Positions 3,268 to 54,382 of a DNA stretch of 64,000 nt are shown piece after piece. The stretch covers positions 186,001-250,000 of IMG/VR virus record IMGVR_UViG_3300034073_003340, one strand, 5' to 3'. Numbering within the stretch: position 1 is the first letter of the stretch; each line of letters begins with the position of its first letter. The translations under genes and the position numbers were made by a program. The notes below the pieces were generated by a model. That model ran no database searches. It saw only the letters and a program-made list of their open reading frames with translations, and was not told the DNA's origin.

Positions 3268-3703
3268 TAATTCCTGGCAGGTAACGCTTACCGGTTGGCG
3301 GTAATGTCAGCAATTGCTTACGGTTGCTGATACCAGACCTCAGACCGAAGCCAATGTGAACCCAACGACGACGTTCGTGGATCAGCTGGTCGAAGGTTAG
3401 ACCAGATTCAGCGATCGCAACACAAACATCATAGGGTGTTCCAAACGATGGACACACAAAGTCAACCGCAAAGCCAAACGAGTGAGCCGAAGTAGTAACA
3501 CCACCAACCGCTCTGTTAACCGCATCGCTTCTAAAAGCTGAATTAACTCGGATAGGCTTGTTACCAAGAATGGCGCGAATCTTTTCCATCTGCTGGGCAG
3601 TATGTGTTAGATTCTGAAGAGTTACACCGGTTGGGATATTTGGAAGACCAGTGGAGGTAGTAGTCATCTCCGCCAGGCTAAAGTTTGGGGTTAGTTGAGT
3701 CAT
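3260..3703 (-). CDS. Peptidase M15A-type Zn D-Ala-D-Ala peptidase, likely endolysin
   Basis: LTPNFSLAEM...NSAFRS..VNRAVGG...SAHSFGFAVDF...DQLIHE...WVHIG motifs; AGGAG SD. Confidence 0.9.
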   Translation of the reverse strand: MTQLTPNFSLAEMTTTSTGLPNIPTGVTLQNLTHTAQQMEKIRAILGNKPIRVNSAFRSDAVNRAVGGVTTSAHSFGFAVDFVCPSFGTPYDVCVAIAESGLTFDQLIHERRRWVHIGFGLRSGISNRKQLLTLPPTGKRYLPGIIK

Positions 3704-10631: not shown

Positions 10632-11789
10632 TTAGTTGCGGAGGATTACTACCAAGTCGCCTGACCAAGAGGGAGGGTTATCGCCTACCACTGCCAAGTG
10701 ATCTCCATAAGCTATTACTCTATCGCCTGCCACTGGGATACTAATTGTGCCCAATAGATCACCAACCGCCCAAGTAATTGTTCCAATCACCTGACCGTTC
10801 TTCTCAATGTCGCGGGTTTGACTCACTGTGGCCGCTTGAGTTGCCTTTACCCTAGAGTTGCTTACGCTGATAGTAAAGGGTTGGAGGGCTGGGTTGAGGG
10901 CAATAGAGCTTGCGCTCGCGGGGCCTTGTCCCACATAGCCTACCGCGATACTTGAAGTGGAAGCTTTGGCGTCTAGTGCCCCTTGTAGACCCGTTACGTC
11001 CTGGATCGTGTGGGTGTGGATAGCCGGAGCCTTGCCATCAAGAGCGGTTTGGAGATTGGTTACCTGAGAGATCGCAATGGAGCCTGTGGCATCTAGTTTG
11101 AGATCCAAGGCCGCTTGTGTCGCAATGCTGATTGGTTTCTGGGCATCACTGGTATTATTGACGTTTGTGATATTGAGAAAACCTTTGACGTCCACATCTG
11201 TGAGTTCGCTGGCCTGACCTGCCCCTGGACTAGTTTTGCCCAAGATGCGGGGTCCTGCGCTCAACTGGATATCAGCAGCCACGTGACTGTGAGTGGCATT
11301 GGCTTTGAGGTCCAGAGCCGTCTGTGTGGCAGTGCTGATTGGCTTCTGGGTATCGCTAGTATTATCCACATTGCCAAGACCAACCGCTGCCTTGTTCAGT
11401 GTTTGGAAAGTTTTATCGCCTCTCCAATACTGTTGGGCCGTTCCTGCCACAATGGCATCTTCCTTGCCAGCCAGGGCCGCTACTGCCGCATTACTCAGGG
11501 GTTTCAGAGCGTCACTGGTATTATTGACGTTTTCCAGTTCCAAAAAGGTTTTGGCCTGAGTGGAGGTCAAGTTTTGAATAGGGGCATCAGTGGAGCCAGT
11601 GGATCTACCCAATAGACCTGCGCCGGGACTTGTTAGACCGCTGGTAGTAATATTACCTTGATCCACCTTGTTGTCTTGATTCAAGTAAAGTTCATCAAAG
11701 TTATTGTTTACTTTAATGAACGCATCGCGCAGGCCCTCGCCGTCACCAGCATTGGCCGCGCTACCAATATTGATAGTTTGCTTTGCCAT
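10632..11789 (-). CDS. Baseplate/tail-fibre protein with T4 gp9/gp10-like N-terminus and tail repeats
   Basis: MAKQTINIGSAANAGDGEGLRDAFIKVNNNFDELY; three NV(N/D)NTSD..KP.S.A..AL repeats; HTHTIQDVTGLQGALDAKA phage-tail repeats. Confidence 0.8.
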   Translation of the reverse strand: MAKQTINIGSAANAGDGEGLRDAFIKVNNNFDELYLNQDNKVDQGNITTSGLTSPGAGLLGRSTGSTDAPIQNLTSTQAKTFLELENVNNTSDALKPLSNAAVAALAGKEDAIVAGTAQQYWRGDKTFQTLNKAAVGLGNVDNTSDTQKPISTATQTALDLKANATHSHVAADIQLSAGPRILGKTSPGAGQASELTDVDVKGFLNITNVNNTSDAQKPISIATQAALDLKLDATGSIAISQVTNLQTALDGKAPAIHTHTIQDVTGLQGALDAKASTSSIAVGYVGQGPASASSIALNPALQPFTISVSNSRVKATQAATVSQTRDIEKNGQVIGTITWAVGDLLGTISIPVAGDRVIAYGDHLAVVGDNPPSWSGDLVVILRN

Positions 11790-11812
11790 TTTATTCTCCT
11801 CGCCCTGGGGCC

Positions 11813-14800
11813 TTAACTGATACTTCCGTCTGTTAGAGCAAGATTGCTCGAGACATTGATCTGGTTGTTATCTGCGGTGTTGGTTACTACACTGCTCTGG
11901 TTGTCATCTAAATCACCTGACAAGTCCCAAATGTTAGCTGCCACTTTGGTCAAAGTAACATTGGAAAATCTCGTGCGAGTAAAACGACTTGTTGGCGTAT
12001 TGATGATCACGCTGGGTCCTGGCACGATTTCTGTTTGACCGGAACCAATCTGAGTGATGTGAATCTGGACACCAATATTTAATTGAACCGTTGAGTTATT
12101 GGGAACCACTACTTGATTGGGTCCAGTAAAAGACCTACGAATATAGGATCCAGCATCACTGGTTTGGAGAGTATAGGAAGCCGTGGTAACTGGAGTTACT
12201 TTCATACCAGCAGCATCAACTTGCTTTTGACCTACCCAAGTTCTAGTTCTACTAAAGTAGCGGAACAAGTAAAAGGTCAGACCATTTGGCACAATATTGG
12301 GGGCCGTGCTGGAGATCCAAGTAATAGGTCCACCCTGCGTTACTTGAAAGTTGACTTGACGATTACCAACTGAATCTTGCTTTACAGCAATCAGGAGTTC
12401 ACTATAAAGTTCACCGCTAGTATTCAGCGGTCCAGGAGCATAGGAGGTTGGCTCTGGTGTCTTGATCGTCAGAGTAGCTGAGCCGGTCAAGTTTACCAAG
12501 AAAGTATTGCCTGATTTTGGATCAATGACACCGTCTGGTACAACTGAGTTGTCTTCAGTATAGCGGAGAAGAATACCACTGGCATTGTAGTGACCAACAA
12601 AGTTTCCTTCGTCTGGCTGGACATCATAGGCCAAACGTGGTCCACTGATAAAGTCCTGATCACTGCGTCTCTTTACACGAGTAAAGGACCATTCACAGTT
12701 TCCTTCTTTGTAGATTTTGCTGAACTCACCATTGTAGTAAAAGTTTACGTTGGTAAGTTCCAATCTATTTTCTGCTCCGCCAGTATTGGCATCCGCAATA
12801 CTGTAGAGACCCACAGTATAGTCTCGGATGGTATCAGGCTGTTGAACGGTGACCTGAACCCAGGGAGTTTTGAGGCTTTCACCTGCGTTATTGGGATCAT
12901 CAATTGGATTACCCTGTGGATCAAGTAATAGGGTCTCGACGTTGTTTCCTTCGTCGTCCTGATTATTCAATAGAGTAACACCGGGATCATCTTCAAACGC
13001 GTCATCTCCCGTAGTGGTTAGAAACTTGGGTCGTCCACCTTCCCAAAGGGGAAGAGATGGGTTATTGATATTCACGCTGTAGTTTTCTGGAATAATGGAT
13101 CCAACATTTTCCATTATCAAAACACCACCATTGTGTTCAATACCTTTGAGTAATGGGGCACCAGAAACCAAAGTAAAGCTTTCGGGACTCAACTGAAGAC
13201 CCGTCCAACCATTTTCAGGAAGACCGCAGTTTTGGAAAACAACACGATTTCCATCCGCAATAGTCGAGTTGTCAATTTTACCCTGAATAGTACAGTTGAA
13301 GAAATTGACATCACCGCCAAGCTGACCATTCAAAGACATAACGGTCAAATCACTCAGAGGACCAGGTCCTCTCAAAAAGGAACAGTCCTTGAAAGTCGCT
13401 TTGCCAACACCACCTACAATCGCAAAAGTAGGCTGAAATATTGAACTTGGTTGATCACTAGTATCAATGGTGATTTTGCTCATGAGCAGTGAATCAACAT
13501 TGAATAGTATTTGGACGTTTCCTTTGATTACTGAATTTGTGGAACCAAAGAAACCCTCAATGGCAAGATTTCTCTTGTTTTGAATATCAACATTTTCCTG
13601 ATATGTTCCACCCAGAAGCATTATGGTATAGGTGGTCAGCAAATCTCCATTGGGGATTTCACTCAACGCGCGATTTATGGTCAGGTAGGGAGAGTTCAGC
13701 GACCCGTTGCCCGTGGTATCATTGCCATTCTTACCAACAAAAATCGTGTTTTGGATCGTCTGAAAGAACTGCTGAACCGAAGACCATACTAGTGTATTAC
13801 TTGGACCCTGTGTTAGAAACTGGCCAGTGGTGCCAGCGGTGGACGGGAAAAGCAGTCCATTTAGGGTCAAAGAGGGCGATTGTAGGGCCACCGCTGGTGC
13901 TTGTAGAGCCAAGCTGGTTCCTGTGCCACCATCTAGTGTGATGCCCGTCTGTGAAACCCTGATAGAGCTGGAAGGAGCAATCGCATGGCTTTCAATGAAG
14001 ACACCATTATTACCAGAAGTGGTAATTGTAAAACCCTGAACGTCCAGATCTCCACCCAGTTGTGGAGTTTCATCAACCACAATTTCAATCAAATTGTTGC
14101 GCAACTGAGCAACTGTCAATCGCTTTGGTTGATTATCACCAGAGGACAAGAAGATGAACTGGTCAGTGTTGGTGACAATTGGCTCGGCGTCCAATTTGCC
14201 AATATCCAGATTGACAGTTGGCGCTTCACCTGTTCCAGTGACCGTTATACCAATTCCACCAGTTACTCCGCTGACACTTCCTGCACCAACGGGTTGCCAG
14301 GATAGATTGGATCCTTGTGCCACCAGGGCAAATGCTCCAGCGCCGCCAGGAGGTGAAAACGCAATTGACTGATTGTTGGAATCACCCACAATAATGGATC
14401 CCTGATTCAGGGTGTGACTCAAAAGACCATAAGGAATTATTTTGGTTCCAGTGGCAATCAATCGACCATTTTGATCAAAGGCAAAGGTTGGAAACACCAA
14501 GTTGCCAGAACCGGTACCAATATTGGTTCCTTGGATTGGAACAGTGATTCCACTCTGATGATCAATATACCAGTCAATAGAGTGTTGAATAGCTTCATGG
14601 GCAGTCAAGCGACCCTTGGCATCAAATGAAAGTCGGAAGTCACCAAGATCACTGTTATAGGTTACTGGGCCCTGGATTGTGTTTGATAGAGTGAAATTTA
14701 TTTCCAATGTTGGATCAGCAGCGCCAACGACTACCGCATTGTCAAATCTATCACTCTGACCCGCGGCATCTCCAACAAAACTCAAACGAGTATTTTGGAT

Positions 14801-14941
14801 TTTCGTCAGTTCATCACTGGCTTGGAACAGCGCCTGTTGAGTCGCATTGGTATTGTCCCTAAACCCCTGTGATGAATTATTGACACCAGGGGTTGGGAAC
14901 GTGACATTCAGGCTATTGGCTCTATTGCGAACGTCGCTCAT
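11813..14941 (-). CDS. Large tail fibre/tailspike-like structural protein
   Basis: N-terminal FPTPGVNNSSQGFRDN coiled segment; IFVGKNGNDTTGNGSLNSPYLTINRAL beta-helix entry motif; C-terminal YTLQTSDAG...IGVQIHITQIGSGQ...LTKVAANIWDLSGDL fibre domain. Confidence 0.75.
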   Translation of the reverse strand: MSDVRNRANSLNVTFPTPGVNNSSQGFRDNTNATQQALFQASDELTKIQNTRLSFVGDAAGQSDRFDNAVVVGAADPTLEINFTLSNTIQGPVTYNSDLGDFRLSFDAKGRLTAHEAIQHSIDWYIDHQSGITVPIQGTNIGTGSGNLVFPTFAFDQNGRLIATGTKIIPYGLLSHTLNQGSIIVGDSNNQSIAFSPPGGAGAFALVAQGSNLSWQPVGAGSVSGVTGGIGITVTGTGEAPTVNLDIGKLDAEPIVTNTDQFIFLSSGDNQPKRLTVAQLRNNLIEIVVDETPQLGGDLDVQGFTITTSGNNGVFIESHAIAPSSSIRVSQTGITLDGGTGTSLALQAPAVALQSPSLTLNGLLFPSTAGTTGQFLTQGPSNTLVWSSVQQFFQTIQNTIFVGKNGNDTTGNGSLNSPYLTINRALSEIPNGDLLTTYTIMLLGGTYQENVDIQNKRNLAIEGFFGSTNSVIKGNVQILFNVDSLLMSKITIDTSDQPSSIFQPTFAIVGGVGKATFKDCSFLRGPGPLSDLTVMSLNGQLGGDVNFFNCTIQGKIDNSTIADGNRVVFQNCGLPENGWTGLQLSPESFTLVSGAPLLKGIEHNGGVLIMENVGSIIPENYSVNINNPSLPLWEGGRPKFLTTTGDDAFEDDPGVTLLNNQDDEGNNVETLLLDPQGNPIDDPNNAGESLKTPWVQVTVQQPDTIRDYTVGLYSIADANTGGAENRLELTNVNFYYNGEFSKIYKEGNCEWSFTRVKRRSDQDFISGPRLAYDVQPDEGNFVGHYNASGILLRYTEDNSVVPDGVIDPKSGNTFLVNLTGSATLTIKTPEPTSYAPGPLNTSGELYSELLIAVKQDSVGNRQVNFQVTQGGPITWISSTAPNIVPNGLTFYLFRYFSRTRTWVGQKQVDAAGMKVTPVTTASYTLQTSDAGSYIRRSFTGPNQVVVPNNSTVQLNIGVQIHITQIGSGQTEIVPGPSVIINTPTSRFTRTRFSNVTLTKVAANIWDLSGDLDDNQSSVVTNTADNNQINVSSNLALTDGSIS

Positions 14942-14953
14942 GCGATCTCCCTT

Positions 14954-17158
14954 TTATTTGTCTCCCGGCGGAAACTTGTAGTATTTACTCTCAGACTGGA
15001 GACTGGTATCAAAAGTCGTAAAGGCAACTGTTGGTGTATCCAAGTTGTCAGGACCGTCAAAAGTTGTAATTTCTGGGAATCCAAATTCAGTTCCATCAAA
15101 AGTAGTTGAAGCAAAACCATCACTAATGAGGAGATACCTATCCACTTCAATAGTGGTTCCCTGAAGATCATCATTAATACCAGCGGTGTCTAGAGCTCTC
15201 ACAATAGCAGGACCGCTTCCTGCTCTCACATGAGCTAATTCAATAGCACATTGGTACCCCAGAATAGTGTCTGGACGTCCTCGCTCTTGTTCACTTATCA
15301 TCCAAAGAGGCAATCCTTCACGACCAGAAATGCCATAACCAGGAAGAGCTCCTGGTAATCTATCGTTGCGATTGATAAGGTCAGATCGCAGGTTCTTTAT
15401 ACTATTGGGATAGTAATTACTTGTGCCTTCCAAGAGGTTCCATTTGGGAATCGCAACAGGTGTCTGACCTGGATTATAACGATTTAGAGGCTCCTCTTGT
15501 CCAAGGGTGTTGAATCCACCTGCCCCTTCCATGGGGTCAAGTATTCCCAAATAAATCACATCGTAGAGATGTACTCCTTCAGGGCTACGTGCTCTGGCCG
15601 TTTGAACTTTACCAATTCTCAACTTAGTTGGATGATGATAGTCTTTGAGGCGATCAATTAGATCACCTGTCTGATAGTTGATACCGTTGGTTAGTAGAAT
15701 TCTATACTGGCGATTTTTTCCAAAATATTGGTCAATTTCTCTATAGAGTTGATCTCTTCCAAGCACAGTCAGTCGGTCTGATGCTAGGGCGCCAGCATTA
15801 TTGACATATCTTATGATTTTGATTTCAGTTCCAGCTGCTGGTATGGAACCAGGAGGAAATATAATAAAATCTTCACGCAACTCAGTAATTCTGGAAATTG
15901 TTCCTCTGTAAATTTGATTATTCAAAAATACATCCACGGCATCACCAAGTCGGCCTCTTGGAACAAGGAACTTTGAATCTGTTCCATTTCCAATATAGAC
16001 TCTCTGACTCACCGAGTAATCAGGTCTTGGCTCTGGTAGAGTTCCCCATACCCATTTGGCTATTTTTTGACGTGCCGGTCCAGGAACATTGAATTGGAGA
16101 CTGGTAACTGAATCAGCAGCAAAAATCGATCTAATGGTAATGGAAAAGCTTCGCTCGCTGGCAATTGCTGACGGACGAACTTCCCCTGTTTCATTATTGA
16201 CGAAAACCACTCTGGCCTCAACAATAAAATCAAAAGTTCTAGTAACCGTCACGTATGGGCATCGACCAATTATAAGACCGGACGATGGATCCAAGAGTAA
16301 GCCTTCTGGTAATGGACGACTACCAGGTGTAATGGTATAGTTGATGACTTGCGATTCAGTAGAATTGCCAGATGCTACTTGGTATTGCGGAACAGCCCTT
16401 ACTCCAAAGTGACTGGGATAGGTCTCAAATGTAGACCCCAAGGATCCCGCTGGAGTTTCCCAGCGAACCACATCGGATAGTCGGGCGTCCAGGACAATAT
16501 CTTGCCCAATTGTCAGCTTGTAGACCTTCTCTGACGTTCTAGGAGATCCCTCTCCGCGAGGATTACTTTGAAGGTCATCCGGGTCTCGAGCATAGACTCT
16601 AAAATAGTAATCACCTGGAACATTTCCAGTAATGGTCGGGGATCCAACAATTCTACCAAATTGGTCAACTTCAAGACCAATAGGCAAACCAGACTGGGAG
16701 CCTGCCGGTCCCTTGTAACCAACCGCCTTGAATTCAAGTGGATCTTGATCTGGGTTGACAATATCCAATTGGATTACAACATTGGATCCTCGATTTACTA
16801 ATCCCAAGTCTTGAATACCAGATGGTGAAGACCAGCTTTGTTCTTCATCGCTCAAATCAACAATAAACCTAAAACTTCTGTCGTAGGTTCTATTGGAAGA
16901 TCGGAGGAATACTCTAAAGACTACTGGATAGCTTTCTTGATCTTTTGGTAATGATCTAACGGTGCCCAGTATTCTCAGAGTTCCATTATTGTAGAATAGT
17001 CCAGGAGGCAATTGGCCGCCAATGAGTTCCAAACGATCCAAATCATTTCTGGCATCTGGAGAAATTTCAAGGCTAATAGAAGCCTGGTCACCACGGCGCC
17101 AAGGTTGTCCATTATTCAATAGATTTCCAGAAGGTGGCGAGAACCAAACAGCAACCAT
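14954..17158 (-). CDS. Virion structural protein with putative Ig-like (He_PIG-type) repeats
   Basis: Three W..P.GSLG...LPxGL...G.I.G...F.V repeats; large C-terminal domain; AGGAGG SD. Confidence 0.75.
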   Translation of the reverse strand: MVAVWFSPPSGNLLNNGQPWRRGDQASISLEISPDARNDLDRLELIGGQLPPGLFYNNGTLRILGTVRSLPKDQESYPVVFRVFLRSSNRTYDRSFRFIVDLSDEEQSWSSPSGIQDLGLVNRGSNVVIQLDIVNPDQDPLEFKAVGYKGPAGSQSGLPIGLEVDQFGRIVGSPTITGNVPGDYYFRVYARDPDDLQSNPRGEGSPRTSEKVYKLTIGQDIVLDARLSDVVRWETPAGSLGSTFETYPSHFGVRAVPQYQVASGNSTESQVINYTITPGSRPLPEGLLLDPSSGLIIGRCPYVTVTRTFDFIVEARVVFVNNETGEVRPSAIASERSFSITIRSIFAADSVTSLQFNVPGPARQKIAKWVWGTLPEPRPDYSVSQRVYIGNGTDSKFLVPRGRLGDAVDVFLNNQIYRGTISRITELREDFIIFPPGSIPAAGTEIKIIRYVNNAGALASDRLTVLGRDQLYREIDQYFGKNRQYRILLTNGINYQTGDLIDRLKDYHHPTKLRIGKVQTARARSPEGVHLYDVIYLGILDPMEGAGGFNTLGQEEPLNRYNPGQTPVAIPKWNLLEGTSNYYPNSIKNLRSDLINRNDRLPGALPGYGISGREGLPLWMISEQERGRPDTILGYQCAIELAHVRAGSGPAIVRALDTAGINDDLQGTTIEVDRYLLISDGFASTTFDGTEFGFPEITTFDGPDNLDTPTVAFTTFDTSLQSESKYYKFPPGDK
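14982..14987 (-). promoter_or_regulatory. TAAATA late-promoter-like box
   Basis: GTAAATAC about 40 nt upstream of the 14941 ATG. Confidence 0.45.
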
Positions 17159-32689: not shown

Positions 32690-32753
32690 ATCAATCTCCA
32701 CGTCTGCTTCCGATAAACCAGATTTAGCAGAACTGGTGAATATGTCAACCAGA

Positions 32754-38252: not shown

Positions 38253-38603
38253 TTAGCTAAATTCACCCGAATAGAAGTGGAAGCCCTCGTCAATCCACTC
38301 GTTGCCGGTCTTGGCCCGCGCCGTCTTGGGCTCAATGGCCTTTGGTCCCCAGGGCTTAGTGGTTTGCTCCACAGTGGCCCAGAACTCCTCGGGAGTGAAA
38401 GGGGTGTTGTATTCGTCGACGATCAGCATGTTGGGCGTCATCATCGAAATGACATTCCGCCAGATATCCACGGTCTTGAAGTTCTCACCCTGGAACATAA
38501 AAGTCCAGCCACCTGCCCACTTGCCAATGTGAATATCTTCAGAAACTCGCTGACCGGTCTGGGGGTTCACCGATGTTTCGCGAATATAGAAGTTCGTTCC
38601 CAT
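38253..38603 (-). CDS. Conserved-type phage hypothetical protein
   Basis: MGTNFY...HIGK..GGWTFMFQ...DEY...FW...GEFS. Confidence 0.8.
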   Translation of the reverse strand: MGTNFYIRETSVNPQTGQRVSEDIHIGKWAGGWTFMFQGENFKTVDIWRNVISMMTPNMLIVDEYNTPFTPEEFWATVEQTTKPWGPKAIEPKTARAKTGNEWIDEGFHFYSGEFS

Positions 38604-38861: not shown

Positions 38862-39428
38862 TTATTCAGAGGGCAACGTGCGCCCCACGTAGGACAGAGG
38901 CAACAAAAGATGCTCTGTGGGATCCAGTAGCGAATGCGGTCGCTCGTCCGTCCAATCAACCGCCTCTTTGGTGCCATGCTTGTGAAGTTCCAAATGTAGC
39001 ATCGACATTGGGCGCCCTTTGTCTTCAATCAGCACTGGGATAACATGCCCGATTATTTCACCGGCTTTGATTCTATCACCGGGCCAATAGTGATAGTTGG
39101 GTTTGATTTCACCATACACCACAACACCACTTTCACCCTCAAGCAATAGTGCCCAGGTGTCCCGCCACCAGGGACTAGGCGGGGTCGCATGGGCACCCGT
39201 AAAAGGAACAAGTGCCACGACTACACTGAATTCAACGGCCGCCACAGGCGTCCCCTCAGGGCAATACAGGTCAACTCCTTCGTGGTAGTGATGTTTGCGT
39301 TTGAAGCCAAACGACCCTGGGTGATCGGGTCCCACAGGAACGCCAGTGTTACCTGGCTCAAATGATAGAAAATCCTCACTACCCTGGCTAGGGTGGAGGA
39401 CCATTGTTGGAAGAGGATTGTGCCACAT
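38862..39428 (-). CDS. M23-family peptidase
   Basis: GSFG..R....HEGVDLYCPEGTPVAAV...GEIIG.V...MLHLE. Confidence 0.8.
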   Translation of the reverse strand: MWHNPLPTMVLHPSQGSEDFLSFEPGNTGVPVGPDHPGSFGFKRKHHYHEGVDLYCPEGTPVAAVEFSVVVALVPFTGAHATPPSPWWRDTWALLLEGESGVVVYGEIKPNYHYWPGDRIKAGEIIGHVIPVLIEDKGRPMSMLHLELHKHGTKEAVDWTDERPHSLLDPTEHLLLPLSYVGRTLPSE

Positions 39429-39464: not shown

Positions 39465-39492
39465 CAATGGGCACTTTTGAAAGTGCCCATTG
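39465..39492. terminator. Hairpin terminator
   Basis: caatgggcacttt..aaagtgcccattg. Confidence 0.75.
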
Positions 39493-39717
39493 GGTTAGAG
39501 TGCTGTTTTTCTCTAAATGCTTCCGATCTATCAACAAATCTTACGCTACGGCCAGTTCATGATTAAGAATCCTGTTTGTGTTATCCAACTATCCAATATA
39601 TCAAGCATCTCATTTTAGGATCTGCGCTACGGCCAGTTCATGATTAAAAACCTCTGTTTAACCTTTTTACAAATGCCTACACCCTGGAGACTAGCAGGTT
39701 ACACCAGGGTGTCAACC
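39465..39717 (-). ncRNA. Promoter-to-terminator short transcript with two MNWP minigenes (putative sRNA/minigene unit)
   Basis: TTGACA-N16-TAGTCT promoter; 23-nt direct repeat at 39544 and 39625; no long sense ORF; terminator. Confidence 0.5.
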
Positions 39718-39718
39718 A

Positions 39719-40093
39719 TTATTTGGACGAGATGCTGCCACCGCTTTGCTTGCCTTCGGCAGCGGTGCGGTTGGTGTTGTAGAATGCCAGTTCTTCAGCA
39801 GTGGCATTGCGCAAAGCGATCCAGCCATGCTTGCCGGTTTCCGTGAGGAACTGGATGTTGGTGCCGATGCCAGCTGCGTCAGCAACTTCCGACGGGATGG
39901 TAAAGCGCAAAGCGCGGACAGCCTGCTTCTTCAGGCGCAGGTCAGCGAGCAGCTCACCCTTGGGGAGGCCCACTGCCGACTTGCGATCGGTGGGACGAAC
40001 CTGCAGGGTTCCGTCCAGAACCCGGATACGGACCTTGGTCGCGGTGCCCATGAGAGCCGATGCGTTCTTGTTGAGGTTTACGGTCTTGCCCAT
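39719..40093 (-). CDS. AbrB/MraZ-like paralog 2
   Basis: KVRIR...VRPTDR...LPKGELL...RFTIPSEVADAAGI...KHGWIAL. Confidence 0.8.
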   Translation of the reverse strand: MGKTVNLNKNASALMGTATKVRIRVLDGTLQVRPTDRKSAVGLPKGELLADLRLKKQAVRALRFTIPSEVADAAGIGTNIQFLTETGKHGWIALRNATAEELAFYNTNRTAAEGKQSGGSISSK

Positions 40094-53266: not shown

Positions 53267-54382
53267 TTACACCAGTTCGAAAACTTCTCCGGTTTCCAGG
53301 TCTTCACACATGATGATGAACTTGTCGACGATTTCCTCGGCAACCTTGGTCACGGCAGCTTCAACAATTGCGTCCACCTCGTCATCGCTTACAAAAGCGC
53401 CATGGACCCTGCGAACCGTTGAACCATTGCTGACCAGCATATCACCCCAGCCCAGCAGGTTCTGCGCACCGCCCTGACCCAGTGCCGTGCGGCTGTCGAT
53501 CTCGCTGCTGACGCGGAAGCAAATACGCGCAGGGAAGTTGGACTTGATAACACCGGTTACAACGTCCACAGAGGGCCGCTGAGTAGCCATAACAACATGG
53601 ATGCCCGCTGCCCGAGCCTTTTGCGCAAGGCGCTGTACGAGCCCTTCCAGTGTTTTTCCACCAGTCTGCATGAGATCAGCAAACTCGTCAATGAAGACCA
53701 CAATATAGGGCAATTCGTTTCCGGCTTCCTTGTAGGCCTTGATATTGCGAACGCGGGCGTCAGCGAGCAGTCGGTAACGCCGCTCCATTTCCTCAACCAT
53801 ATCCTCGAGGGCACGGATGGATTCACGCGGGTCGGTGATAACCGGCTGGACCAAATGAGGAATGCCATTGTAGATGGACAGTTCCAACATCTTTGGGTCG
53901 ATCATGAGGAACTTACATTCATCAGCTGACAAAGCTGCCATGAGGCTGATGATCATCGCGTTGATACCAACGCTTTTGCCTGAGCCAGTTGTGCCACTGA
54001 CCAATACGTGGGGCATGGTTGCGAGGTCGGTGACGACCACTTCACCCATAACGTCCAGCCCGAGAGCAATGGGCAAAGCCGCAGTGGTGGTCTTGAACTC
54101 CTCGCTGGTCAGAACCTCGTTGAGGAGTATGGTCTTGCGCTGCTCATTGGGAATTTCAACAGCCAGTGTGGGGCTACCAGGCATCACGTTGATCTGGATG
54201 CTCGCAACACCAAGCAGGCGCGCCACGTCCTCGTTGAGCTTCATGATCTGCGAAGCACGAGTTCCAGCGGGAATTTCGATTTCGTAAACGCTGACCAGAG
54301 GTCCTTGCTTGGAACCAATAACACGAACACGATGTCCGAATTCGTCCAGGGCGCGTTCCAGTGCGGTAGCAAAGTTACTCAA
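53267..54382 (-). CDS. ftsK: FtsK/SpoIIIE motor domain only (no TM, no gamma)
   Basis: PHVLVSGTTGSGKS, MIDPKMLELSIY, IDEFADLM, AQKARAAGIH..ATQRPSVDV.TG.IK.N, GAQNLLG.GDML; TTG start. Confidence 0.9.
   Translation of the reverse strand: MSNFATALERALDEFGHRVRVIGSKQGPLVSVYEIEIPAGTRASQIMKLNEDVARLLGVASIQINVMPGSPTLAVEIPNEQRKTILLNEVLTSEEFKTTTAALPIALGLDVMGEVVVTDLATMPHVLVSGTTGSGKSVGINAMIISLMAALSADECKFLMIDPKMLELSIYNGIPHLVQPVITDPRESIRALEDMVEEMERRYRLLADARVRNIKAYKEAGNELPYIVVFIDEFADLMQTGGKTLEGLVQRLAQKARAAGIHVVMATQRPSVDVVTGVIKSNFPARICFRVSSEIDSRTALGQGGAQNLLGWGDMLVSNGSTVRRVHGAFVSDDEVDAIVEAAVTKVAEEIVDKFIIMCEDLETGEVFELV

Follow-up and report, generated by a model that had tools for sequence, protein, structure and literature searches.

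Minigenes, in which a Shine-Dalgarno (SD) sequence is followed by a start codon, one to a few sense codons and a stop codon, have mostly been known as a laboratory curiosity. The bar minigenes of phage lambda lie within larger lambda transcripts, their toxicity is seen mainly in hosts defective in peptidyl-tRNA hydrolase (Pth), and their role for lambda itself is unknown. Published work on minigenes shows that inhibition and peptidyl-tRNA accumulation grow as the ORF shortens (PMC2490762). Very short ORFs are also known in other settings: in the EHEC LEE1 leader, translation of a two-codon minigene is needed for optimal expression of the next gene, and its position matters (PMC3262186), and retapamulin ribosome profiling in E. 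coli has revealed start-stop minimal ORFs (yecJ, hslR), for which regulatory ribosome occupancy was proposed (bioRxiv 10.1101/520783). Leader-peptide attenuators such as trpL and pheL likewise consist of a promoter, a short ORF and an intrinsic terminator ahead of a gene.

Here we describe a small predicted promoter-to-terminator unit of a giant environmental phage, whose only coding content is a four-codon ORF, present in two copies. Related giant phages keep an ORF of two or four codons in the same unit, suggesting that it is probably a real, translated minigene RNA and not a chance pattern.

Structure of the unit in the window

The analysed window is a stretch of 64,000 nucleotides (bases 186,001-250,000) of a 435,856-bp virus record, which has direct terminal repeats and a G+C content of 46%, and which comes from subsurface, soil and wastewater metagenomes. 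The genes around the unit lie on the minus strand, as does the unit itself (39715-39452). The first-pass annotation had described a cassette promoter and a terminator enclosing about 210 nt without a long sense ORF, and two identical minigenes (MNWP) within direct repeats, and our analysis confirmed that each of these elements is present where it had been placed. One label requires correction, because the TTGACA that had been assigned to a canonical -10 is a canonical -35 (39715-39710), which is followed by a 16-nt spacer ending in TG-C, with an extended-10 TG at 39696-39695, and by TAGTCT (39693-39688), a weak -10 that is helped by the extended-10 TG. The predicted transcription start lies near 39681-39679, just before the conserved TAGGCA. 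A 9-bp inverted repeat (39679-39687 / 39704-39712) brackets the -10 element, and other cassettes and the homologous units have equivalent palindromes, whose arms differ in sequence but stay complementary.

The promoter is one of about 25-30 near-identical cassettes on this strand between genome positions 218 and 277 kb, with the pattern ctGGTTGACA, 14 nt, TGyTA.., a palindrome around the -10, then ATAGGCAg, a short leader ..ACAGGAGATCGAA, and ATG. Almost every small gene in this region has its own copy, which looks like an early-gene region read by the host polymerase. A search of IMG/VR with the promoter-cassette pattern returned only two unrelated hits.

The minigene ATG AAC TGG CCG TAG occurs at 39641-39627 (copy A) and at 39560-39546 (copy B). 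Copy A (39627-39655) has the SD AGAGG (39655-39651) and copy B (39546-39573) has the SD AGGA (39573-39570) within AACAGGAUUC, in both cases with a 9-nt AU-rich spacer before the ATG. Copy A has the best SD-to-anti-SD score of any start codon in the transcript. The direct repeats (39625-39650 and 39544-39569) are 26 nt long with 25/26 identity (23 nt exact) and a start-to-start spacing of 81 nt, and looser similarity extends to about 40 nt and to a UUGAUA.AU.GGA-type motif after each copy. Downstream of the minigenes lie the central purine-rich motifs UUGAUAGAUCGGA (39534-39522) and UUUAGAG (39517-39511), and UAGAG can pair locally with CUCUA of a conserved C/U-rich 3' box, ACUCUAACCCAAUGG (39487-39501); a local hairpin appears in the minimum-free-energy fold. 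The box lies immediately 5' of the terminator and runs into its stem. The intrinsic-terminator-like hairpin has a perfect 13-bp stem (39492-39480 / 39477-39465) with a 2-4 nt loop, and is followed by the U-rich tail UCUUGACUUU, which extends to 39452. The predicted transcript of about 215 nt has no conserved long ORF; the longest ORF in the unit is an antisense ORF of 33 codons that is not conserved in the relatives. The whole transcript was not predicted to fold more stably than shuffled sequences (z = -0.8), and both initiation regions were predicted to be fairly open (unpaired probability about 0.55).

The unit sits between two genes. The upstream gene (39719-40093, minus strand), whose stop codon lies 3 nt from the -35, encodes a protein of 124 amino acids (p124) with a predicted tandem AbrB/MraZ-like fold, based on an AlphaFold2 model (pLDDT 85) with weak Foldseek matches to MraZ and AbrB/MazE/SpoVT. 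The downstream gene (38862-39428, minus strand) encodes a Peptidase_M23 protein of 188 amino acids (PF01551, E = 4.9e-7), which is 72-87% identical in relatives. Only 36 nt separate the terminator from its ATG and a promoter scan found no promoter there, so that it is probably transcribed by read-through.

The 15-mer minigene sequence is found twice, against 0.10 occurrences expected when up to two mismatches are allowed (1 of 100 shuffles reached two), and it is found nowhere else in the genome. However, a single SD-led mini-ORF is not unusual, since a scan of the intergenic DNA of this genome found 43 comparable ORFs of 2-8 codons. The significance of the pattern therefore comes from the duplication and from conservation in relatives, and one phage alone would not be convincing. 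No Rfam family matched at gathering score in the whole window, and a permissive scan of the region gave a single chance hit (E = 1.6). A nucleotide search of phage GenBank records returned no match, and a search of IMG/VR with the exact minigene 18-mer returned one hit, a chance match in a high-GC coding region.

Homologous units in related giant phages

A back-translated search of IMG/VR with p124 found nothing, whereas a large protein search found 17 homologues in metagenomes, some of them on contigs of 370-480 kb. By fetching the contigs of the p124 homologues, by scanning IMG/VR and JGI metagenomes with an alignment of the well-conserved M23 protein, by scanning for the conserved 3' box, and by searching with a covariance model built from nine units, we recovered the homologous unit in 12 further distinct sequences from uncultured phages (L006, L011, L014, L015, L017, L018, L042, L131, L252, L253, L266 and L268; L numbers designate sequences of relatives). 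The homologous units carry the same promoter. The unit is absent from some close relatives (L008, L010, L012, L019 and L264). Among more distant giant phages, the covariance model gave nothing or only chance hits in coding DNA in eleven further IMG/VR records (G001, G002 and G005-G013), XacN1, LR745208 and LR756501, and three further IMG/VR records, two of them short fragments (G014 and G016) and a third (G017), were also negative. The nearest cultured relatives by M23 are jumbo phages of Xanthomonas, Stenotrophomonas and Pseudomonas, which lack the unit. DNA contigs from four sequencing runs showed no copy-number variants of the repeat, and one related strain lacks the unit.

When the units were anchored on the start codon, every unit had a purine-rich SD, an ATG or GTG start and an early in-frame stop. 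In most relatives the SD is AAGGAGGU, close to a perfect complement of a generic 16S 3' end, and it lies 5-9 nt before the start; the SDs of the window are modest in comparison. The ORFs are MNWP with TAG (the window, twice, and L006), MNWP with TGA (L017), MTWP with TGA (L015), MQAR with TAA (L011 and L014, which differ by a synonymous GCC/GCT), MTAR with TAA (L131), MTVS with TAA (L018), MTVF with TAA (L042), MRKI with TAA (L252), MRKL with TAA (L253), and MK, with one sense codon after the start, with TAA (L266 and L268). All three stop codons thus occur and never a sense codon, the first position of the start holds only A or G, the nine inner nucleotides are almost completely diverged between classes, and no unit has an ORF longer than four codons. 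For these sequences, the chance that a start is followed by exactly four codons is about 0.05, yet at least four ORF classes with almost no shared inner nucleotides keep it. In 11 of the 13 units this start has the best anti-SD complementarity of all starts in the transcript, and in L015 and L017 it ranks second; the scoring covered 11 units, and L266 and L268 were read from the sequence without scoring. The distance from the -35 to the start is 74-83 nt where a single promoter is evident. L015 and L017 also have an enlarged unit, with a further promoter and a 10-codon ORF upstream.

Conservation of the start and stop in related phages had been named in advance as a point on which the minigene proposal could fail, and the 12 related sequences carrying the unit came out in its favour, each keeping an SD, a start and an early stop. 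Maintenance of the start, the stop and the short length through near-saturating change of the interior is what a translated ORF under purifying selection looks like, and a non-coding motif would not show this pattern. Note that the homologues are 13 sequences from one clade that share ancestry and are not fully independent samples, so that the argument is one from maintenance and not from independent origin. The architecture is kept across lineages whose M23 proteins are only 57-87% identical.

Outside the ORF, the block ACUCYAACCCAAYGG, which runs into the terminator stem, is the most conserved sequence in the homologues, and the stem itself covaries across 13 homologues, with 4 of 7 scored pairs changed on both sides. 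Motifs of the type UGAUAGA, UAGAGA or UAGAAAC recur between the ORF and the box in most homologues, although this was read by eye and no statistical test was applied, and alignments outside the anchored blocks are poor. In L011, L014, L018, L131, L252 and L253 the 3' end of the SD, the spacer and the start codon form 9-10 of 11 possible pairs with the box, and L266 and L268 keep 7-8 pairs, with a compensatory U:A to C:G change; the nucleotide after the start switches between A:U and C:G. This helix is absent in the window, L006, L015 and L017, and weak in L042, and is a feature of a large part of the family but not of this phage. In L131 and in L266/L268 the A of ATG replaces a G that would pair in the helix, which argues for a start-codon constraint over a pairing constraint.

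Among these sequences, only the window has two copies. The closest relative (L006/L007; neighbouring proteins 85-86% identical) has one minigene with a 19-nt core identical to that of the window, a promoter that differs by a single base (TTGACG for TTGACA), and otherwise clearly diverged flanks. In the window, copy A sits 74 nt from the -35, the usual distance in the family, and copy B sits 44 nt from the 3' box, likewise at the usual distance (44-94 nt in the relatives). The window therefore carries an 81-nt internal tandem duplication of the SD-ORF-motif module (39544-39650), and only the functional core stays identical between the copies.

Interpretation of the unit and alternative explanations

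We interpret the unit as a self-contained small-RNA gene of a clade of roughly 430-500-kb uncultured phages, with an early-type sigma-70 promoter and an intrinsic terminator, both of which, like the transcription start, are predictions, and with a genuinely translated minigene as its conserved functional core. What the comparison establishes is that selection keeps the ribosome-binding site, the start, an early in-frame stop and the very short length, and that it does not keep the peptide or any particular codon. What translation achieves is, by contrast, our inference: the RNA would act through ribosome engagement, with ribosomes loading on the SD, making a two- or four-residue product, terminating, and being able to re-initiate. 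By analogy with lambda bar and synthetic minigenes, this would tie up initiating ribosomes and yield short peptidyl-tRNAs that burden Pth and tRNA pools, and the published effect of ORF length (PMC2490762) fits the observed ceiling of four codons. Such a burden would help an early takeover of host translation by a phage that encodes 59 tRNAs (including Asn-GUU, Trp-CCA and Pro-CGG) and a bS21 homologue, but no Pth or RF-1-domain protein; this gene content is compatible with a strategy of taxing host translation while supplying its own components, but does not demonstrate it. We hold the ribosome-engagement reading with moderate confidence. No RNA run was listed for this DNA, there is no transcript, ribosome-occupancy or toxicity evidence, and in six relatives the SD 3' end and the start codon lie in the 9-10-bp helix (7-8 pairs in two more), which would hinder, not favour, initiation and also offers a non-coding reason for part of the purine-rich 'SD...GUG' sequence. 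In the relatives with this helix, ribosome binding would additionally switch the structure of the RNA. A more far-reaching possibility, which we regard as tentative, is a new class of phage small RNA whose activity is gated by, or consists of, translation of a two- or four-codon ORF, either as a dedicated translation sink that giant phages deploy early together with their own tRNAs and bS21 to take over host protein synthesis, or as a ribosome-operated switch in which ribosome loading on the minigene frees the anti-SD-like C/U-rich box to act on other RNAs.

The interpretation given in the first-pass annotation was thus supported only in part. A dedicated promoter-to-terminator unit is supported, and the general idea of a lambda-bar-like, ribosome-engaging minigene remains the best reading. 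A Trp- or Pro-specific tRNA sink is not supported, because the sense codons, including the last one (CCG, CGT, TCG, TTC, ATT, CTG or AAG), differ between lineages, and any sink would be general. A decoy or antisense to the cassette motif is not supported either, because the AACTGG in the repeat is in the same sense as the motif and is absent from most homologues, so that it is probably coincidental, and because no complementary target above chance was found in the phage genome (10 twelve-mers, against our estimate of about 11 expected by chance). A signalling tetrapeptide is also not supported, and two identical minigenes are peculiar to this phage and not a trait of the family.

Among the alternatives, a cis-acting leader or attenuator of the M23 gene is doubtful but cannot be excluded. 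In this view the unit is the 5' leader of the M23 mRNA, the hairpin limits early expression of a cell-wall hydrolase, and translation of the tiny upstream ORF modulates read-through or downstream translation, comparable to LEE1. In the window, L006, L011, L015, L017, L018, L042, L266 and L268 the M23 start lies only 13-40 nt after the hairpin, too close for an ordinary separate promoter plus leader. On the other hand, the same unit is followed by other genes in L014, L131, L252 and L253, the next gene in L252 and L253 has a clear cassette promoter of its own, and L008, L010, L012, L019 and L264 have the M23 gene without the unit, so that there is no fixed association with a downstream operon. 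In addition, no conserved antiterminator alternative to the hairpin was found, the minigene stop lies 44-125 nt upstream of the box and hairpin, too far for a terminating ribosome to touch it, and predicted pairing between the RNA and the M23 translation start was no better than in shuffled controls. A non-translated regulatory RNA, either a base-pairing sRNA or a protein sponge, appears less likely still. The C/U-rich box would then be an anti-SD-like seed with the purine-rich 'SD...GUG' as its intramolecular partner, and the early stop would only abort accidental translation, as was proposed for start-stop sites in E. coli, with the suggestion that a stop right after an inadvertent start limits harm (bioRxiv 10.1101/520783). 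The helix with its compensatory changes and the conservation of the box fit this view, and several GGA motifs in the window RNA resemble CsrA/RsmA sites, although this is a reading by inspection without a test. However, SD, start and stop are all kept where the helix is absent or weak, ATG replaces GTG at the cost of a base pair, losing the start or SD would be the easy route if translation were unwanted but no lineage has done so, and the window duplicated the whole SD-ORF module. As for a trans-acting sRNA, a conserved box is present and the phage genome offers no target above chance, but the host is unknown and host targets were not examined, so that the comparison does not settle the matter either way.

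The remaining alternatives are very unlikely. The tetrapeptide itself could be the product, for example a lysis-released, phage-specific signal taken up by oligopeptide permeases and varying between phages as specificity types, as with arbitrium peptides; the length of four residues is kept in 11 of the 13 units while the sequence diversifies, and conservative pairs exist (MRKI/MRKL, MTVS/MTVF and MNWP/MTWP). However, L266 and L268 encode only Met-Lys, codon changes are mostly non-synonymous and radical between classes, there is no signal sequence and no candidate receptor that co-varies, no export route is known for a cytoplasmic formyl-tetrapeptide, and the neighbouring p124 looks like an AbrB/MraZ-type DNA binder, not the TPR receptor of an arbitrium-type system. 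A decaying remnant of an ordinary gene cassette, or a chance pattern without function, might be suggested by the resemblance of the minigene leaders to the canonical cassette 5'UTR (..AACAGGA..), by a gene of roughly 150 amino acids that L008, L011, L012, L015 and L017 have between p124 and this slot and that the window lacks, and by the frequency of chance mini-ORFs, but the unit coexists with the 150-amino-acid gene in L011, L015, L017, L018 and L131 and is not its remnant. Repeat RNAs of the ToxI or CRISPR kind are not supported: in place of a tandem array of about 34-40-nt repeats, there are two copies 81 nt apart in this phage and a single copy in the relatives, the downstream gene is Peptidase_M23 and not a ToxN-like endoribonuclease, only the direct and inverted repeats described above were found, no hairpin typical of CRISPR repeats was seen on reading the repeat, and the conserved features are start and stop codons. 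A tRNA-like fragment was also considered and dropped.

Comparison with bar minigenes and other very short ORFs

The unit shares with leader-peptide attenuators the order of promoter, short ORF and intrinsic terminator ahead of a gene, but it has no conserved regulatory codons and no mutually exclusive antiterminator structure, its ORF is far shorter and too far from the hairpin, and it also stands in front of unrelated genes. The LEE1 minigene is likewise a translated tiny ORF in a roughly 170-nt untranslated region upstream of a gene, of which only the translation matters and not the product (PMC3262186). However, in LEE1 the position relative to the next start codon is critical and no terminator intervenes, whereas here a strong hairpin terminator separates the minigene from the next gene, which differs between lineages. 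The start-stop ORFs of E. coli also have an SD-led start followed almost at once by a stop, with a proposed role that does not involve a product (bioRxiv 10.1101/520783), but they lie inside protein-coding genes and have no sense codon after the start, while the present ORFs have one or three and lie in a dedicated non-coding transcript.

The closest resemblance is to the lambda bar and synthetic minigenes, which are likewise strong ribosome-binding sites followed by an ORF with no plausible protein product, and bar is also carried by a phage. Growth inhibition and peptidyl-tRNA accumulation were not assayed here. The minigene described here differs from bar in having its own promoter and terminator, a conserved 3' box and, in most relatives, a long-range helix, and in being kept as an ORF (start, stop and length) while its codons drift, which is evolutionary evidence that translating a near-empty ORF is itself useful to a virus. 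It adds an RNA component to the translation-related genes (tRNAs, bS21) of huge phages and shows that ORFs far below annotation thresholds can be picked out by comparative analysis. The 290-bp unit can be cloned and tested directly, which makes the old question of what minigenes are for approachable. In contrast to the bar sites within larger lambda transcripts, the present unit is best regarded as a dedicated minigene RNA conserved across a diverse clade of giant phages and duplicated in this genome.

Translation-related genes outside the window

Outside the window, ARAGORN predicted two tRNAs with the anticodon CUA (genome positions 99130-99204 and 293258-293333, minus strand) among 59 tRNAs, and these two look like amber suppressors. 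TAG is the rarest stop codon in this genome (84 of 687 crude gene calls), and it is the stop codon of both minigenes here, although a crude check showed no sign of genome-wide recoding of TAG. The phage also encodes a homologue of ribosomal protein bS21 (genome positions 358984-359121, minus strand; PF01165, E 4.6e-10), whereas neither Pth nor an RF-1 domain was found.

The M23 gene and the surroundings of the RNA unit in relatives

The first 27 nt of the M23 gene (ATGTGGCACAAYCCTCTYCCAACNATG; window positions 39402-39428, minus strand) are nearly invariant at the nucleotide level between the window and the same place in the related phage sequences L008, L010, L011, L015 and L017. Gene callers disagree on the start of this gene, between the first ATG and the ATG at codon 9. 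The pyrimidine-rich stretch resembles the 3' box of the RNA unit, and it may be an RNA-level signal. In several relatives, the gene right after M23 carries the Acb1 family (PF23474, anti-CBASS), as in L011 (4849-5331), L012 (4177-4647) and L264 (5108-5590), whereas the window has a 116-aa gene with no Pfam match in that position (38253-38603).

The relatives L015 and L017 have an enlarged RNA unit (3396-3608 in both sequences), in which a full cassette promoter and a 10-codon ORF (MWRVRETRAG) lie about 210 nt upstream of the minigene, at the position occupied in the window by copy A, one of its two minigene copies. The window also holds an FtsK/SpoIIIE-like ATPase and large tail-fibre-like proteins according to PHROG matches (53267-54382 and 10632-17158, minus strand), which were not examined further in this study.

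The family of promoter cassettes and a possible regulator

On the minus strand, we recognized a family of about 25-30 promoter cassettes, whose -35 elements lie in the window at 32748, 40153, 40587, 41618, 42321, 45394, 46251, 47736, 48881, 49453, 51702, 52572, 54433, 55160, 57264, 58385, 62957 and 63814, and which continue on to genome position 277 kb. The cassettes follow the pattern ctGGTTGACA, 14 nt and TGyTA.., followed by ATAGGCAg and then by ..ACAGGAGATCGAA-ATG, and a palindrome brackets the -10 element. The arms of the palindrome differ between the cassettes (CACCAG/CTGGTG in either orientation, ACACCCTGG/CCAGGGTGT, and others) but stay complementary, which points to a nucleic-acid hairpin or a flexible operator and not to one fixed protein site.

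The 124-aa protein encoded upstream of the RNA unit (39719-40093, minus strand) may be the regulator of the promoter cassettes. The protein is highly conserved, its gene stays one or two genes upstream of the RNA unit in most relatives, and a possible paralogue lies outside the window near genome position 262,300. The predicted structure of the protein is a confident model, although its matches to known structures are weak; these matches are to the tandem swapped-hairpin fold of MraZ and AbrB/MazE/SpoVT.
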